Assembly: GCA_964252035.1 (NCBI GenBank)
Contig: OZ176200.1
Strand: one strand, 5' to 3'
DNA from: Podarcis erhardii
Lineage: Eukaryota
Length of the DNA: 64,000 nt
Shown: one piece after another, positions 4,132 through 62,010 of the stretch
Layout of the letters: each line of letters opens with the position of its first letter
How positions within the stretch are numbered: position 1 is the first letter of the stretch
Translations under genes and position numbers: made by a program
The notes under the pieces: model-generated
What the model was told of the DNA's origin: nothing
Databases searched by the model: none
Seen by the model: only the letters and a program-made list of their open reading frames with translations

Positions 4132-4574
4132 CCCCCACTGCTTAAGCAACAGTGTGGCTATTCTGACACATGCCAGCTAAACTTGTCACAGGCTACTCAA
4201 AGTGGGCATGAACTTTTCAGTGAATGCGCATAGGTCCTGTTCACTACCATTCAGAGCAGACTAATTCGATCCAAGAGGTTTGGCCAAGGCCTTCATTTGC
4301 TTCCCTGCCTGGGAGAGGCTGCGCGCGGCTAAGGCTCCCCCAAGAGCCATGCTCCCTTTAAAGAGCCACGTGGAGTGTGTGTGCAGCTCTTGGGGGCTTT
4401 TCCTGAGGAGGGAGAAGCGCAGCCCACATGCTCCACGCGGCTCTTTAAAGGGAGCCCTGACAGAGCCTCCTGCCTGCATTCACTGCATAAGATGCACACA
4501 CATTTCCCCTTACTTTTTAGGAGGGGAAAAGTGTGTCTTATAGAGCAAAAAATACGGTACATACTCAAGGTCAG

Positions 4575-4672
4575 AGATTCATAGAGTTGGAAGGGATCGT
4601 GAGGGTCCTCTAGTCCAACCTCCTGCAATGCTGGAATCTTTTGCCCAATGGGGTTTGAACCCACAACCCTAA
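4575..4672 (-). mobile_element. SINE fragment with CR1-type 3' end
   Basis: CATAGAGTTGGAAGGGA...CTAGTCCAACC...CTGCAATGC block, shared with the copy at 28022-28160. Confidence 0.6.
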
Positions 4673-5238
4673 GACCATCCTAGAATCTCCCATTCAAAAG
4701 CTCAAGCAATAGGTGACCTGAAAGATTCCTTACCTGAAGCCTAAAAGAGCCAGTCAAAGTAGACCGGAGGTGATTACACTGGTCAACAACAAATTTGGTG
4801 TCTGCGTTTTTTCAGTTGATTTAGGACGAATCTGATGCGCTGAATCCAAAAATCACATTGGTTTTGCTCAATCAGGTCAAGTTTTGTTCACATGTACGCT
4901 TGTGTGGAACATTTTAGAAGAAGTTGGTGGGGGTAAAATGCCATGTCGAATAATTGTTTTGATTGTAAATGATTATTTTAATGACAAGAAGTATTCAGGT
5001 CCGATAGTTCTGGGTGATTATGTCAAAAAGGGATCAGTTTGAAGTCATAAAACCTCGAAATCTTCCATAAATTGGTGCACAAGTTTCATAAGGCGTGCTT
5101 ACCATGCTTATTTTGGTATTAAACTTGGTGACCAGGATAAAGCTTGGGCACCACACATGGTGTGTAAGGCATGCACCGAGACTCTACATGGGTGGACCAA
5201 TGGCAAGAGGAGTCTGAACTGTGGAATTCCCATGGTTT

Positions 5239-7330
5239 TTTTTTTTTTTTTTTTTTTTTATAAATATTTATTAAGGTTTTTTTTAAAATATAAATGCACA
5301 CATAAAACAATCTTACTTTTATAACAACAAATTCTTCACTTCTTTGGACTCCCTCACGTCCCCCTCTCCCATTTACATCATTAAAAAAAAATTTTTCCAA
5401 ACAAATTATCAACTTGTTTACAATCTCATGTCCACACATTCCAATATGATTTAACACTTTTTCCAATAAAATTTTTATATTTTCTTTAGTCTCACTTATC
5501 ATCAAATTTAAATCTAGTTTAGTGGTGGCCAGTTTTTTATAATCTAGCATCCTTCTTAACATTCAAACAAATTACAATGTTTTTGTAGATACATCTTGAA
5601 TTTCTCCCAGTCTTCCTCCATCTTTTCTTCTCCCAGATCTCGGATTCTGCCAGTCATCTCGGCCAGTTGCATATAGTCCATCAGCTGCATCTGCCACTCT
5701 TCCAGTGTGGGTAAATCTTGAGTTTTCCAATTTTTTGCGATGAGAATCCTTGCTGCCGTTGTTGCATACATGAAAAATGTTCGATCCTTCTTTAACACCT
5801 TCTGGCCGACAATACCCAGAAGGAAGGCCTCTGGTTTCTTAGTGAAGGTATACTTAAATACCTTTTTCAGCTCATTGTATATCATTTCCCAGAAGGCCTT
5901 CACCTTAGGGCATGTCCACCAGAGGTGGAAGAATGTTCCTTCATTTTCTTTACATTTCCAACATTTATTGTCAGACGAATGGTATATTTTGGCAAGTTTA
6001 ACTGGGGTCATGTACCATCTATATATCATTTTCATAACATTTTCCTTCAGAGCATTACATGCAGTGAAGTTCAACCCAGTGGTCCACAACCTTTCCCAGT
6101 CCTCAAACATAATGTTATGCCCAATATCCTGTGCCCATTTTATCATAGCCGATTTAACCATTTCGTCTTGTGTGTTCCATTTTAGCAGCAAGTTATACAT
6201 TCTAGATAGTACCTTGGTTTTGGGTTCTAACAATTCTGTTTCTAACTTCGATTTCTCCACCTGGAACCCTAACTTTTTGTCATTTTTAAAAACTTCTTTA
6301 ATCTGAGCATAATGTAACCAGTCTCGCACCTTATCCTTCATTTTCTCCAAACTCTGCAATTTCCAATTGTCTCCATCTTTTTCTAATAATTCCCAATATT
6401 TTGGCCATTTGGCCTCCATATTGGGTCTTTTTCGGGCCTTAGCCTCCAGAGGTGAGAGCCACCTTGGAGTTTTGTTTTCCAATAAGTCTTTATATTTCGT
6501 CCAGACATTGAACAGTGCTTTCCTGACAATATGGTTCTTAAAGGCCTTATTGATCTTAACTTTGTCATACCATAAGTATGCATGCCAACCAAAAGCATTG
6601 TTAAAACCTTCCAAATCCAGCACGTCAGTGTCTTCGAGAAGTAGCCAATCTTTTAGCCAGCAGAAAGCTGCGGCTTCATAGTACAACTTTAAGTCTGGCA
6701 GGGCAAAGCCACCTCTTTCTTTCGCATCTGTTAATATCTTAAACTTAATTCTGGGCTTTTTGCCCTGCCAGACAAATTTAGATATATCTTTCTGCCACTT
6801 CCGGAAGCACTCCGTTTTGTCCACAATCTGTAATGTTTGAAACAAAAACAACATTTTTGGCAATACATTCATCTTAATAGCAGCAATTCGGCCTAACAAA
6901 GAAAGCTTCAATTTTGTCCAACTATCCAAGTCTCTCTTAATTTCAGACCAACATTTTTCATAATTATCCTTAAATAGGCTCAGGTTTTTTACTGTTATGT
7001 TTACCCCTAGGTATTTTACTTTTTTAACCATAGTTAGTTCTGTTTCTCTCTGAAACCGTTCCGACTCTATATCTGTCAAATTTTTCCCCAACACTTTAGT
7101 TTTCTGTTTGTTTAGTTTAAATCCCGCCACCCGACCAAAATCCTGTATCAATTGTAATACTCTTTTCGTACTAGACTCTGGCTCCTGCAGGGTCAAAACT
7201 AGGTCATCTGCAAAAGCTTTCAATTTATATTGTTTCGCTCCGACCTGAATCCCTTCCACCAACCGGTCCCCTCTGATCAAGTTCAAAAGCACCTCCAGAA
7301 CCGAAATAAATAACAAAGGGGAAATCGGGC
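5239..7330 (-). mobile_element. 5'-truncated L1 LINE, young insertion
   Basis: 13-bp TSD ATTCCCATGGTTT (5226-5238 and 7331-7343). PolyA tail (T-run 5236-5259) preceded by AATAAA (5267-5272, minus strand). ~300-nt 3' UTR with a G-rich tract. Open ORF2 remnant. Confidence 0.95.
5556..7330 (-). CDS. L1 ORF2 C-terminal ~591 codons (RT motif B onward plus Cys-rich domain); no native start
   Basis: CPISPLLF (the QGCPLSP RT motif, cut at the truncation point), FADD catalytic motif, KYLG, and CWKCKENEGTFFHLWWTC zinc knuckle. No stop or frameshift before TAA at 5556-5558. The ORF-track start at 7358 lies outside the insertion. Confidence 0.9.
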
Positions 7331-9936
7331 ATTCCCATGGTTTGGAGGGAGCCGACAAACCATGTCACTGACTGCTACTTCTGTGCTGTTGATGTGACTG
7401 GGATCAACAGAAAGAACCAGAGCAGCCTCAAGTATCCTGATCTTCAATCAGCACATCGTCCTGTAGCTCATTGTGATGAAATTCCAGTGCCTATCTTCAG
7501 AGAGCTTCCTGACATTAGTGACGAAGATGCCTCCAGTGTTGAAGGACATGAAGAAGAAGAAGTGGTTCTTGAAGATAATGCTCCACATCCATTTTCCCAA
7601 AAGGAGTTGAATGATCTAGTTCGCGACCTCAGCTTGTCAAAGGACTCTGCCGAACTGTTGGCATCCAGATTGAAGGAAAAAAACCTCCTCTCTGACAGTG
7701 CTCGAATCAGCTTCTTCCGCAACAGGCATCAAGAGTACCTCCGTTTTTTTCTCGGAAGAGAAGGACTTGGTGTACTGTGCAGATATTGCGCAGCTTCTGC
7801 TCAAGCTTGGAGTGCCACAGTACGAACCCAAAGACTGGAGACTGTTCATTGACAGCAGAAAGTGATCACTGAAATGTGTTCTGCTACACAACGGCATCCA
7901 GTTTGCCTCTATACCCATGGCTCACTCGACTACACTGAAGGAGAAATATGAAGCGGTGAAGTATGTGCTGGAGAAAATTGGTTATGATCAGCATAAGTGG
8001 TTTATTTGTGTTGACCTGAAGATGGTGAACTTTTTGTTGGGACAACAGTCTGGCTTCACCAAGTACTCATGTTTTCTGTGCATGTGGGATAGTAGGGACC
8101 GTGCTCAGCATTACACAAAGAAGGACTGACCTGTGCGGGAGGAATTGGTGCCTTGCAAAAAAAGGAACATCATCAATGACCCTCTGGTGGACAGAGACAG
8201 AATACTCTTCCCACCGTTGCACATCAAGCTCGGCTTAATCAAGCAGTTCACCAAGGCACTGGACAAGGATGGTGACTGCTTCACTTACTTATGCCAGGCT
8301 TTTCCAGGATTGACCATGGAGAAGTTGAAAGCTGGCATCTTTGACGGTCCTCAGATCCATCAGCTCATCAAAGATCCAGAGTTCGGAAAGTCAATGAACG
8401 AAGTGGAACTGGAAGCGTGGAAGGCATTTGTTCTGGTAGTGAAGAACTTTCTTGGCAACAATAAGGCCAGAAACTACGCAGAACTTGTCAACAACATGCT
8501 GACTGCTTTCAGAAACCTGGGCTGCAACATGAGCGTCAAGATGCACTACCTATTTTCACATATGGACCAGTTTCCTGAGAACCTGGGTTCAATGAGTGAC
8601 GAGCAGGGGGAGAGATTCCATCAGAACATGAAAGAGATGGAGGCCAGGTATCAGGGTTGCTGGGATGCAGTCATGATGGCTAGTCTGAAGAGAGACCTCC
8701 CTGCCACTGAGCATTCCAGGAGTTCCAAGAAATGGAAGTTCAAGCCCTGAAGTTTGAAAAATGGTGAAGCAACATGCAATTTATGTGTACTTACCTTTAT
8801 CGATGCCCACCATTCAGCTTACAGTAATCGATGTTTCTATCAGGTAATCAATATATGTTGCTGGGAAAACATTTTTTTCTCTTAAAAACATATTTAGGAT
8901 GGTATGTGTTGACAAAAATCAGCTGATAATGCCACAAAAATGTAATCGATTTTGTCACAAGATCTCATTTTTTTCAAATCAACATAGCACAAAAACCTGA
9001 CCTGATGGAGAGAAACGGATGCCATTTCCTGATTCAGCAGTGCAAAAATACTCTAAATCATTTGTAGAAATCTAGACAACATTCAAAAAGTAAAAAATTG
9101 TTGCCCAGTGTTATCATAGTGGCATTCAGATACTGTTGGACTACAACTCTCAGCAGCCCCAGCCAGCATGACCAATGGTCAGAGATGATAGGAGCCGAGT
9201 CCAGCAACATCTTGGGAGCACCAAGTTGCCCACCATTGGAGTAGACAATACTGAAGCAGAGAAAGCAATAATCAGACTACATATAAAGCTGCTTTATATG
9301 CTTATTCCTAGGACTTGTATTTCTATTAGGATATATTTTTGGGGAGGGGCAGGGGAATTAAAATCAAGCACAAGCTTTTTATTCAAAGTCTGGAAGACCA
9401 TTGTTCTAACTGCGTAAGGCCACTGGTATATGCTTGCAATGTATGAAATCTGGATGTCTTAAGCTTCAGTGGACACAAACCAGGCGCAGCACTCCTGCTA
9501 TAAAATGTTTTTTATATCACCTGTTGGGGTAATTTTGCCAGAGCATAAAGACAAAACAAGCAGTGGTAAAAAAGATAGAGAGTAAGTAGCAGGAAAAATG
9601 TTAAAATAACACCAGCAGTGAAGCACTAAAGCTGTAAAAGTGAAGGGAAATTTGAGTTAAAGAATAGGAAAATATTTATACCACTGTTCTCTTGTGGCTA
9701 GTCTTTACTACACAGGCCCTCAGGCACTGTGCTGGAAGCATCCGATGGTACGTTCAAGTGCTGGCCATTTCTTTTTAGAAAAGATCATAGTATGTGCAAC
9801 TGAAATGCCTTGGCAGAGTAGAATGAATCCATTCCTTCCGTTTCTGGGGTGGACCCCTCAGGTTGTGGCTAGGACTCTCTGAGCACATAACTCAATCAAT
9901 AAATCATTTTATTTATTTGCCGCCTTTCCAAAGTTA

Positions 9937-28021: not shown

Positions 28022-28160
28022 AAGAATCATAGAACTCTAGAGTTGGAAGGGACCTTGAGGATCATCTCTAGTCCAACCCCCTGCAATGCAGGAATTTGCA
28101 GCTGCCCCGTACATGGATAGAACTTTCAACCTTGGCATTATCAACACAACACTCTAACCA
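28022..28160 (-). mobile_element. tRNA-headed SINE with CR1-type 3' end
   Basis: Reverse complement of the 12121-type element; GAATCATAGAA...GAGTTGGAAGGGACC...CTAGTCCAACC. Confidence 0.6.
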
Positions 28161-36838: not shown

Positions 36839-39130
36839 TACTTCTGAGTAGAGATGCCTAGGATTGCATGGTAAAGAACCATGAGATTCTGGGGCCAACT
36901 TAAGTAGTTGGTCTATGTAGTAAATATGTGTTATGAAGCAACTATGTGTTATGAACTATTTGTTCATAACTATGTGTTATGAAGATTTCTGCAAACATAA
37001 CATGAAGGCTGGCAACATTAAACCTGCTGTGTGGGAATACCTTGCAGACAACCACCATGCCCAGAGACCGCCAGCCAGGTTGTGCAGAGAAATGACCACT
37101 GGGAGGAGTGCAGAGAGATGAAACACCATAGTGCATCTGGATGCCTTCATCTGCCCCGCCTGCAACTAAAAGGGTCTCTCCTGTATCAATCTCTACAGCC
37201 ACAGCAGGAGCTGTAACTCTTCAAACAGTTTGACTATACCCCCAATGGTGCACTCTTCCATTGTCTCTTGAGACAGACCAATACCAACAATAACAATAAG
37301 GTTGGGTGAGTTCAGCCTCCCCATCTGTATGTCATCAAATACTTCTCTGGTTTATAGATCAGTCTCTAAAGTAGGAGTAGGGAAGCTGTGGCTCTCCAGA
37401 GGCTTTGAGACCGCAACTCCCATCTGTTGCACTCATGTCCTGCTTGTGGACTTCCCATAGGTGTCTTGTTGGCCATTGTGAGAACAGGATGCTGGACTAG
37501 ATGGGCTCTTATGTTACTATCCCTGGGGCAGATGGGAGCTGGAAGCCAACAGCTTCTGCAGGTCAAAGGTTCTCACTCCTCCACTACATAAATGTTCCTC
37601 TTAAGGAAGGCAGGAAGGAACGAAGGAAGACCTTAAATATGTGATTGCTGCATAAGGATTCTTTGGTTCCTTCCACACCCCCACAGCTGAGTCAGTCTAA
37701 TGAGGCACCATTGAGAATACCTAGGTCCGCTGATGGCGTCACTCAGGACGAAGAGAACATTTGAGGGCTGTAGGCCAGCTGTTAGCTAGTCAGGAAAGCT
37801 ATGCAGGAGTAATACCATTTTTAAAAAAGATTCAGACCAGAATTGTGGAAGAAACTCAGATTTCCCTCTTTCCACTCAAGAGGGGAAAAAACGGCTTGCC
37901 AAAAATATCAGCATTAAATATTTGTGACAGCAGCAACAAAAATGGCCAAGGGTGCCAACTAGGAAAGAGTACTCAGCTGCTAGGAAAAAAAGGGTTCTGT
38001 GTCCAGCTCAGAGATGGGAATGCTCTTTGCTTTGAGAGCAGAAGGAACAACAACAAAATGAATATCCCCTGTGCCTCTTGCATCAGCCTGGGATGAAAAT
38101 GCTTGATTGCATGAAACGTCATCTGCTCCTAGTTAGAGGAATGCTGCAGACCAGCCCCAATGCAGTTGGCAAGCCAAATGCATTCACACACACACACAGA
38201 AATGGCATGGCAAAAATGCACACAGCTGACATGCTCAAGGGAGGCATAGCCGCCATCCTCTGCCACTTCAGATGACCCTCGTGGCAGGGCCCCAAGCTGC
38301 TAATCTTGACAGTTGAAAAACAATCCACTGGTGCTTCAAAAACAAAATGAAAATACTCATCGCCCACTCCCAGCCAATACTGAAAGGAAACCTGTTGTGG
38401 TTAAATGACTTGGTCAGTTCTTCGGGGATTTTCCAAAGTTTCCTATAAAAAGGAATCTGTGGGAAATGAACAATTGCATAATAGCTAACACATGCCAATT
38501 CATATAAGGGTATTATCTTTTACGGCATGTGGGTCTCAATTGTCCTTACTCTGGCAAATTGCTGTCTTGCAACACTTCTTCCTATTCAACTATTTACACA
38601 GTTTATTCCAACCCAAGCTTTCTTGTTGTTAAAGGCATTTGCCATCTGCATTAGGAAAACAAAACAAAAGCAAGGCTATGCTTATTGTTATTGTTGTTGT
38701 TTGGCATAATATATTCTCATTTTTCTCACCTACCACAAAATATATTGAAATAAGAGATCTATTGAAAATGGAAGGGCTGTTAAAGGCTGAGAGGACTTAG
38801 GAGTTTTATATCTTGAGAAAGCTGAAGACAAACACTGCTGCTGTGATCTTTCCATTCATCCCACTGGAGCTGCAAAGAGCTGTGAACCCTGCCAAAGAAA
38901 TGGGGAAGATGTCCTAGCAAATAGATCCCACTGATTCCATGGCTTTAACAATTTGGGCTATTAAGTGTGTTGGCAAGGAGATGGCAAATACACAATCCAG
39001 CTATAGAGCCTGTTCACATGTTTCTGTTCTAATGGTGAAAGGGAAAGCTGTTAAATGGATCGCCCACCTGGAAAATAGTGAACTGACAATGGGACCATAT
39101 AATTAAGATGTGGGTGGATTGTGGGGGGAA

Positions 39131-52632: not shown

Positions 52633-52931
52633 CCTGGGTCTTTGTTGTAAGACACTTTGAACATGATTTTTTGTGTGGGAAAGCAGCATACAAATTGAAT
52701 GAATGAATGAAAAAGTGAGTGTCAACAACAAATCCAAGGTACAACAGGAAGGGGAAAATGTAACCTCTGCCACATATGAATATTCATTAAAAGATTTGAC
52801 TTGGGCCATAGCTATACAGTGGCTTTTTCAGAGTGGGGTGGTCAGGAATATCTTTGCTGAACCATGCCCAAAGCAAAAGATTATAAGCTGACTGGAAATA
52901 TCTTCCTTGGCATTATTCTAACTATCTTAAC

Positions 52932-53018
52932 CAGGCATAGGCAAACTCGGCTAACAGGACAGGGATGATGGGAGTTGTAGTCCCAAAATATCTGGAGGGC
53001 CGAGTTTGCCTATGCCTG
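52932..53018. mobile_element. 87-bp internally deleted palindromic hAT-type MITE
   Basis: Perfect 20-bp TIR CAGGCATAGGCAAACTCGGC; perfect 8-bp TSD ATCTTAAC (52924-52931, 53019-53026). Confidence 0.9.
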
Positions 53019-53609
53019 ATCTTAACAAAATATTAGCTACCTTTACAGCACGATACCATTCCTTGACTCACAAGGAGTAGGAGTAGGAGTAGGAATGGGG
53101 TAGGAACTTGTACTTCCCCAAATGATACATGGACCCAAAGCACAAATACCCTTCAAAATTTGCACTTCTTCAAATTTTGGGACTACCAACCCAAACATGT
53201 GCACAAAATGCATATATGGGGGGAGGGAGGTAATGTGCATAAACATGCATACGTATGGGAAGATAGAATAAAGATTGCACTAAATTATGTAAAATTATAT
53301 ACAAAGATTGATGCATTTGGAGAAATGAGACTTAAGTGCTGATGAATTGTTATGAGAACACATTTGAAAAAATGATTCACAAACTCGTGTGCCTATGTAG
53401 TGAACTGAACTAGAAGAAAAAAGAGAAACTGAGGAAAACTAAAATGGCACATTTATCCATCCCTACCTTGTAGTAGCGATGAGGGAAAAGTTACAGTCAG
53501 TTTGCATTTAAAGGAGAACCTGCTTAATTTGTACTTTATGAAACAGTATGTGTTTCTTATATGCACAGGAAGGCATATACTAGGGGGGAGTGTGCAGAAG
53601 AATGCATGT

Positions 53610-60800: not shown

Positions 60801-62010
60801 CTCTTATGTATGCAATCCATGGGTTGTAAAGGGGCAGTTTAGACTTACAGGGCAGGATTTAGGGACTAGGCTGTGGGATCTTGTGCAATGACTCCGAGCC
60901 CAGTGCTGTATCTTCCCACTATCTTCCACAAAACCTCCCTTTTCCATATATCCATGCATTCTCTGAACCTGATGGCTCTGTGTGAACATTACTAACTTGA
61001 ATTACAGTGAAACGTAGGGCCCATCTGCACTATATATTTAAAGCACTAGATGTTTTAAAAGGTATTATTCCCAGAGTAGTTTAACATCCAGTCCCTCTTC
61101 CCAGGGAACACTGGGAACTGTAGTTCTATGAGAGTTAATTGGAACCAACTGACTGGTCTCAGTACCTTCAACAAATTACAGTTCCTCGGATTCTTTGAGG
61201 GAAACCATGACTACTTAAAGTGGTGTGTGTGTGTGTGTGTGTAGTGCAGATAGGGCCTGAGTATGCTCCTTAGTTCACTTTGAGTACTCCATTTTAATCA
61301 GGGATCACAACGGGAGCTTAAGTGCATATATGGTTCCATTTTTACCTGGGTTGGCAGTGCCTTAAGGGAGAGGGGCTCAGGTTTGTACAATGAGAGGATG
61401 CTAATGAGCCTGTGTAGCCTGCCAGCAACTCTTAAGCCAGGAGTAGGCAATGTGGTGTTCTCCAGCCGTTTCTGGGCTATGAGTCCCAACATTCCTGACC
61501 ATTGGTAATGCTTGGTGGGGCTGATGGGAGCTGGAGTCCAATGTGATCTGGAGGACAGCACCATGTTGGCTACCCCACTCTTAAATTCTAGTTTCATTGG
61601 AAGGTAAGTACAAAAACAAATGTCCATTGCTTTCTTTACTTTCCAGATTTAGTACTGGTCTTGGTCATTTATGGCTTGTGGGGAGATGTCCATTCCCAAG
61701 GAAAGTCTCTGTTCATTGAGGGGTCCTTGGTGAGCAACCAGTGGGATCCACCACCATCCTGGCCATTTTGGGGGCTGAGCCTTCACTTATAGATGTCAGT
61801 GAAGACTGTTCCTCCTGGCTTGCATGGGGGAAAAGAAGTGCAGTCTCAAAAACAGATGTCAGTGTTGGAGGAGGAGCCTGCAAAAACCTCATCGTCCCAA
61901 GAATCTTTGGCAGGAAAGAATTTAGCAATCCTATGTCATATTACTCATGGAGCTTGTCTGGCCAAGTGCTCAAACTGTTAAGCACTACAGAGAATTAAGT
62001 TCTACCACTA

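Follow-up and report, generated by a model that had tools for sequence, protein, structure and literature searches.

Nested transposon insertions in Podarcis erhardii: support for an L1 fragment within a Chapaev3 element within a hAT-type miniature element

A 64-kb window of the Podarcis erhardii contig OZ176200.1 (the whole stretch of DNA that was analyzed; all coordinates are positions in it) contains a compact nest of transposable elements, for which the region 4400-9600 was inspected letter by letter. An outer hAT-type miniature inverted-repeat transposable element (MITE) holds a decayed copy of the Chapaev3 transposon which, in turn, holds a 5'-truncated L1 element; all three assignments, as well as the order of nesting, hold up when tested and are supported. 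It is highly probable that three successive transpositions occurred at this locus, in the order MITE, Chapaev3, L1. The three pairs of target site duplications (TSDs), the termini and identities of the elements, the reading frame that is restored on excision and the relative decay of the three elements can all be read directly in the DNA.

The three-level nest, along with an age order matched by decay, had been proposed in a first-pass annotation of the window, and both proposals are borne out by the present analysis. TSDs are found at all three levels, together with the expected termini, and decay tracks nesting. The MITE, with a TSD conserved in 7/8 positions, is ~19% off the in-window consensus of its family; Chapaev3, with a 3/3 TSD, shows 94% identity to a further member of its family and carries several lesions in its open reading frame (ORF); and the L1, with a 13/13 TSD and a pure tail, is under ~3% diverged. 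The features of the nest are listed in Table 1.

The L1 and Chapaev3 levels

The inner element (5239-7330, minus strand, ~2.1 kb) is flanked by a 13-bp TSD, ATTCCCATGGTTT, at 5226-5238 and 7331-7343. The two copies are identical in 13/13 positions, the match extends neither way, and this is the sole exact pair of 13-mers at that spacing among 61,184 window positions. At the 5' junction of the L1, base 7331 could be the first base of the element, and a microhomology of 1-2 nucleotides (nt) is possible. Excision of 5239-7343 yields the continuous transposase frame NCGIPMVWREPTNHVTDCYFC, in agreement with the claim of the first-pass annotation that removal of the L1 joins GIPMV to WREPTNH in frame. 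An intact homologue of 569 amino acids (aa), P0121, is uninterrupted at this site, with FGIPMVWREPTNH contiguous over the position of the L1 (longer stretch CLKFGIPMVWREPTNHVTDCYFCA); in a tblastn comparison, the two segments of P0121 that align to the window overlap exactly on the duplicated GIPMV, which is the translated TSD. On the primed strand, the target reads ...ATGGTTT/GGAGGG, with a T-rich nick at GTTT/GG; T-rich nick sites are typical of the L1 endonuclease.

The largest ORF of the window, 600 codons on the minus strand (5556-7358; the runner-up has 205 codons), belongs to this element. It matches the last part of the Pfam model RVT_1 (E 7e-12) and aligns to residues 662-1224 of the 1275 residues of human L1 ORF2p (E 7e-60), an alignment that takes in both the FADD motif and, towards the C-terminus, the Cys-rich block CWKC...H...C. 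The best matches are all from Podarcis, a result that supports a lacertid host; over 563 residues, the ORF is 96% identical at the aa level to a Podarcis muralis L1 (P0235), with homology beginning at CPISP, at base 7331/7330. Because the copy is truncated on its 5' side, at about residue 662 of ORF2p, it lacks ORF1 and the APE-type endonuclease. PF03372 does accompany RVT_1 in longer relatives from this L1 family, which indicates that the copy is a truncated member of this family and not a representative of a different one. The original description of an intact L1 ORF accordingly stands in one respect, the 590 codons that are left being free of stops, but not in the other: what remains is a 5'-truncated C-terminal fragment of ORF2 that was dead on arrival. 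Judging from its sequence, the copy cannot move by itself, lacking ORF1, the endonuclease and half of the reverse transcriptase. When random substitutions in the ORF were simulated, only 4.5% of the runs were stop-free at 3% divergence; given that all 590 codons are still open, the L1 is young, under ~3% diverged. The copy resembles vertebrate L1 elements (human ORF2p, PDB 8sxt; Podarcis muralis L1) in the combination of a reverse transcriptase with a Cys-rich C-terminus, the poly(A), the 13-bp TSD, the T-rich nick and the 5' truncation, and differs from them in that only the 3' 2.1 kb is present, with ORF1 and the endonuclease lacking and the reverse transcriptase half present.

The middle element extends from 4777 to 9110 and measures 2229 bp once the L1 and one copy of the L1 TSD are subtracted. 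Its terminal inverted repeats (TIRs), CACTGGTCAACAA (4777-4789) and CACTGGGCAACAA (the reverse complement of 9098-9110), agree in 12/13 positions, and longer imperfect subterminal inverted repeats lie inside them. The element is flanked by the TSD TTA (4774-4776 and 9111-9113), with A before the left copy and T after the right one. The rule for Chapaev3 is a TWA TSD produced by insertion between A and T (PMC4079192), and the published hallmarks of these transposons are invariable CAC...GTG termini and a transposase with the motifs C(2)C, LH and H(4)H (PMC4079192, PMC3014272). In the transposase encoded here, SCFLCMW (C(2)C), PPLHIKLG (LH) and KMHYLFSHM (H(4)H) follow each other in this order, and the intact homologues are alike in this respect. 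The TSD, the termini and the transposase motifs thus support the assignment of the middle element to Chapaev3, within the CMC superfamily. No family was matched when the pieces of the transposase and its intact homologues were scanned against Pfam. Harbinger was considered as an alternative identity for this element and rejected: the TIRs start with CAC, the published Chapaev motifs are present, and no transposase family, Harbinger-type included, was matched in the Pfam scans.

The element shares with the Chapaev3 transposons described in animals (Chapaev3-1_AC of Anolis; Merrow, Garfield and Conan; PMC3014272, PMC4079192) the TWA TSD between A and T, a length of ~2.2 kb and a single transposase of ~560 aa with the C(2)C, LH and H(4)H motifs. 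The TIRs are likewise of the CAC...GTG type, CACTGGTCAACAA here as compared to CACTGRWAAACA in Chapaev3-1_AC. The Anolis Chapaev3 families are 12-35% diverged, in contrast to the 94% identity between copies in the present case. Lesions in the transposase gene were called against the intact homologues, using tblastn and motif coordinates, and comprise, in addition to the L1 insertion, stop codons at three sites, a single frameshift, the loss of 12 bp and an N-terminus that has degenerated (Table 1).

Table 1. Features of the nest and lesions of the Chapaev3 transposase
Feature	Positions	Strand	Remarks
MITE TSD, left, AAGTAGAC	4757-4764	.	7/8 identical to 9239-9246
MITE, left 12 bp, CGGAGGTGATTA	4765-4776	.	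its final TTA is the left TSD of Chapaev3
Chapaev3, left part	4777-5238	+	TIR 4777-4789 CACTGGTCAACAA, subterminal repeats, degenerate N-terminal coding region; L1 TSD copy 5226-5238 at the end
Transposase lesion: degenerate N-terminus	5040-5042 (stop)		start codon missing, loss of CxxC, additional codons, stop in frame
Transposase lesion: L1 insertion			after codon ~97
L1 poly(A) tail	5239-5259	-	21 unbroken A (T on the + strand); a run of 24 T starts at 5236, 3 of these in the TSD
L1 3' untranslated region	5260-5555	-	AATAAA a few bases ahead of the tail; ORF stop at 5556-5558
L1 ORF2, 5'-truncated	5556-7330	-	end of reverse transcriptase (FADD motif) to C-terminal Cys-rich domain; 590 open codons and stop
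L1 TSD, second copy, ATTCCCATGGTTT	7331-7343	.	
Chapaev3, right part	7344-9110	+	rest of transposase, natural stop 8748-8750, right TIR 9098-9110
Transposase lesion: frameshift	7744-7750		in a T run
Transposase lesion: stop	7863-7865		relatives have R
Transposase lesion: stop	8127-8129		relatives have W
Transposase lesion: deletion	after 8681		four codons (12 bp) missing
Chapaev3 TSD, right, TTA	9111-9113	.	followed by T (9114); A (4773) precedes the left TSD
MITE, right 125 bp	9114-9238	.	ends in CCCACCATTG, reverse complement CAATGGTGGGCAAC
MITE TSD, right, GAGTAGAC	9239-9246	.	

The outer MITE and alternatives to three successive insertions

When Chapaev3 and one TTA are taken out, 4765-4776 is joined to 9114-9238 to give an element of 137 bp. 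The arms of the rejoined MITE are equal in length, and the block AGAT..TGGACT is found at the same offset in both, as a precise excision should give. The earlier proposals that the TTA-flanked Chapaev3 splits a MITE, and that the 8-bp TSD of the latter is now divided across ~4.5 kb, hold up: TTA is present on both sides, the TIRs match in 12/13 positions, the 137 bp are in register, and the flanking 8-mers AAGTAGAC and GAGTAGAC agree in 7/8 positions, the chance of a match of at least 7/8 at that spacing being 5.3e-4 per position. The left end begins with C.GAGGTG and is similar to those of further members of the family, CAGAGATG. In an iterated nhmmer search, ~9 copies of this family were detected in the window (E down to 5e-27), each of them matched on both strands. 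The copies are 15-26% from the consensus, and the right part of the focal one is 81% identical to it. The designation of the MITE as palindromic is valid for the family, given the profile matches on both strands of each copy, but not for the focal copy, in which the arms agree in only 29/68 positions in register (43%) and the DNA fold is no better than that of shuffled sequences (z-score -0.76).

With respect to the YARNG ends of hAT elements, the right end, CAATG, fits and the left end, CGGAG, has one mismatch; by eye, the right end also matches the TIR of the Anolis element hAT-HT1_AC, CAGTGATGGSSAACCT, in 13/16 positions (PMC3014272). A sister MITE of 87 bp (52932-53018) has a core in common with the focal family and 20-bp perfect TIRs, CAGGCATAGGCAAACTCGGC, beginning with CAGGC at both ends; its perfect 8-bp TSD (8/8, ATCTTAAC; span 52924-53026) supports the hAT assignment. 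Taken together, the 8-bp TSD, the YARNG-like ends and the sister copy support the classification of the outer element as a non-autonomous MITE of the hAT type, an assignment that is less secure than those of the L1 and Chapaev3. The family is similar to the hAT-Charlie-type MITEs of squamates (hAT-HT1N1_AC, hAT-N1_AC; PMC3014272) in length (~135 bp), CAG-type termini, 8-bp TSD and high copy number, and differs in being old (15-26% from the consensus) and in showing a TSD in only 2 of about 8 window copies. Tc1/mariner (TA) and PIF/Harbinger (TWA) were also considered for the outer element and rejected because the ends they imply are not inverted repeats. A literature search with a 15-mer from the MITE core returned only an unrelated primer match.

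Two observations weigh against the outer level as described. The left remnant of the MITE is just 12 bp long and agrees only in part with the family consensus; the outer level therefore rests on the register of the arms, the sister copy and the TSD matched in 7/8 positions. Furthermore, five other old copies in the window have no recognizable TSD, and the 8-bp rule is thus seen in only part of the family here, although TSD loss is to be expected in old copies at 15-26% divergence from the consensus. These observations leave room for a nest of just two levels, in which Chapaev3 would lie beside the MITE or truncate it, 4765-4776 would be unrelated flanking DNA and the 7/8 match would be fortuitous. 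Such an arrangement would be compatible with the short and diverged left remnant, with the agreement of the focal arms in only 29/68 positions and with the lack of TSDs in most of the old MITE copies. It appears improbable, however, because a match of at least 7/8 (p ~5e-4 per position) is found exactly where symmetric arms predict it, integration of Chapaev3 does not remove target DNA, and the left 12 bp start with C.GAGGTG, much as further copies do on their left side.

If, alternatively, a composite had moved as a unit, that is, Chapaev3 already containing the L1 or the MITE already containing Chapaev3, the order of arrival would differ from the order of nesting. Non-autonomous DNA transposons can carry inserts, as exemplified by hobo_AC of Anolis with its captured transposon fragments (PMC3014272), and the TIRs and TSD of Chapaev3 are still nearly perfect. 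Nevertheless, the L1 is the least decayed part of the nest (under ~3%), the ORF lesions of Chapaev3 and the degenerate termini of the MITE make late mobilization of either host unlikely, and neither composite has a second copy in the window; we therefore regard transfer of a composite as very unlikely. An assembly artefact, with one or more of the junctions being a chimeric join of repeats, might be suspected in a region that consists wholly of repeats, but seems even harder to credit: misjoins produce neither matched TSDs at both ends of an insert nor a frame that is restored on excision, and the sequence is free of N gaps to a distance of 33 kb from the nest. BLAST comparison of the L1 and Chapaev3 with the remainder of the window detected no copies of the same families, and a test of the joined outer flanks for a fourth level of nesting or a paralogous empty site yielded nothing across the junction. 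Three successive insertions, nested in the order of their arrival, thus remain the highly probable history of the locus.

Proposed course of events and implications

The mechanism ascribed to each step follows the known behavior of the respective family, and the order presupposes that no composite moved as a unit. Initially, a non-autonomous hAT-type element of ~137 bp would have inserted, duplicating 8 bp of its target. Chapaev3, a cut-and-paste transposon, would then have entered an ATTAT site 12 bp inside the MITE, with duplication of TTA. Finally, target-primed reverse transcription would have placed the L1 in the transposase gene, antisense to it. For this last step, we envisage that the + strand was nicked at GTTT/GG and that the T-rich end so released served as a primer on the L1 poly(A); synthesis probably halted within the reverse transcriptase domain, leaving a 5'-truncated L1 of 2.1 kb, and a second nick 13 bp away would account for the 13-bp TSD.

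Nested insertions are ordinary in vertebrate DNA; the locus adds no new principle, and neither a new mechanism nor a new type of element comes to light. Nested transposon chronologies ('transposition in transposition', TinT) are a routine dating tool (PMC3014933). The present nest conforms to that approach in that an inner element interrupts an outer one, each event has its own TSD and the inner element is the younger; the difference is that a single locus with three superfamilies is involved here rather than a genome-wide statistic (PMC3014933). The locus is a clean case of nested insertions that order the activity of a hAT MITE, Chapaev3 and L1, and the nest could act as a presence/absence marker among lacertids. 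Its modest additional value lies in placing the activity of a Chapaev3 family in the lacertid lineage after the old burst of hAT MITEs and before the current L1 activity. A more detailed scenario can be offered only tentatively and is, in our estimate, rather unlikely to hold in full: the locus might be a three-state marker for wall lizards, with an L1 that is species-specific or still polymorphic and a Chapaev3 family that reached lacertids fairly recently by horizontal transfer.

Relatives of the Chapaev3 family and other repeats in the window

The closest intact relatives of the Chapaev3 family of the window come from ocean metagenomes and invertebrates. The window transposase is 81-85% identical at the aa level to intact homologues of 553-569 aa, and close homologues are encoded in Helobdella robusta, a species listed among those with Chapaev3 elements. 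Two scaffolds of the Tara ocean metagenomes (L001, L002) contain an intact 569-aa ORF with 84% nt identity to the window copy over 1.9 kb; their right ends show CACTGGG followed by TWA and A, with two different flanks, and the transposase is identical across three Tara samples (L001-L003). An internally deleted derivative of Chapaev3 (L004/L005) is 94% identical in nt sequence to the window copy over 1.3 kb. This derivative (L004:142-1946, L005:31-1835) is 1805 bp long, with perfect 13-bp TIRs, the termini CACTGG...CCAGTG, and TTA on both sides, preceded by A on the left and followed by T on the right; the left TIR of L004 is identical to that of the window copy and has A and TTA ahead of it. 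These independent copies thus bear out the ends assigned to Chapaev3 in the window. The derivative (L004/L005/L006) was found in one ENA metagenome assembly and in two Logan run assemblies.

The pattern of relatives suggests horizontal transfer, a process on record for Chapaev3, because copies are 94% identical and the family shows 84% nt identity to the ocean-metagenome elements and ~80-85% aa identity to proteins of firefly and leech, whereas the Chapaev3 elements of Anolis died out long ago. In the wider set of comparisons, the transposase pieces together with their close relatives are ~80-85% identical at the aa level to the firefly and leech proteins and 78% identical to a shrimp protein.

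Several further repeats were noted in the window. The sister MITE is far better preserved than the old palindromic family and may represent a younger subfamily of deletion derivatives. The MITE copy at 61438-61580 has an exact flanking direct repeat of 8 nt, TTAAGAGT, located 2-3 bases off the termini inferred from other copies; the match may be fortuitous, or the ends of this copy may have changed. Another member of the MITE family, at 37350-37610, has ~95 bp extra between its arms, which may be another small nested insertion or reflect a longer variant of the family. Just upstream of the nest, 4582-4637 has in common with 28038-28095 an 88%-identical segment of 58 bp (catagagttggaagggatc...ctagtccaac...) that looks like an interspersed repeat resembling a short interspersed nuclear element (SINE).

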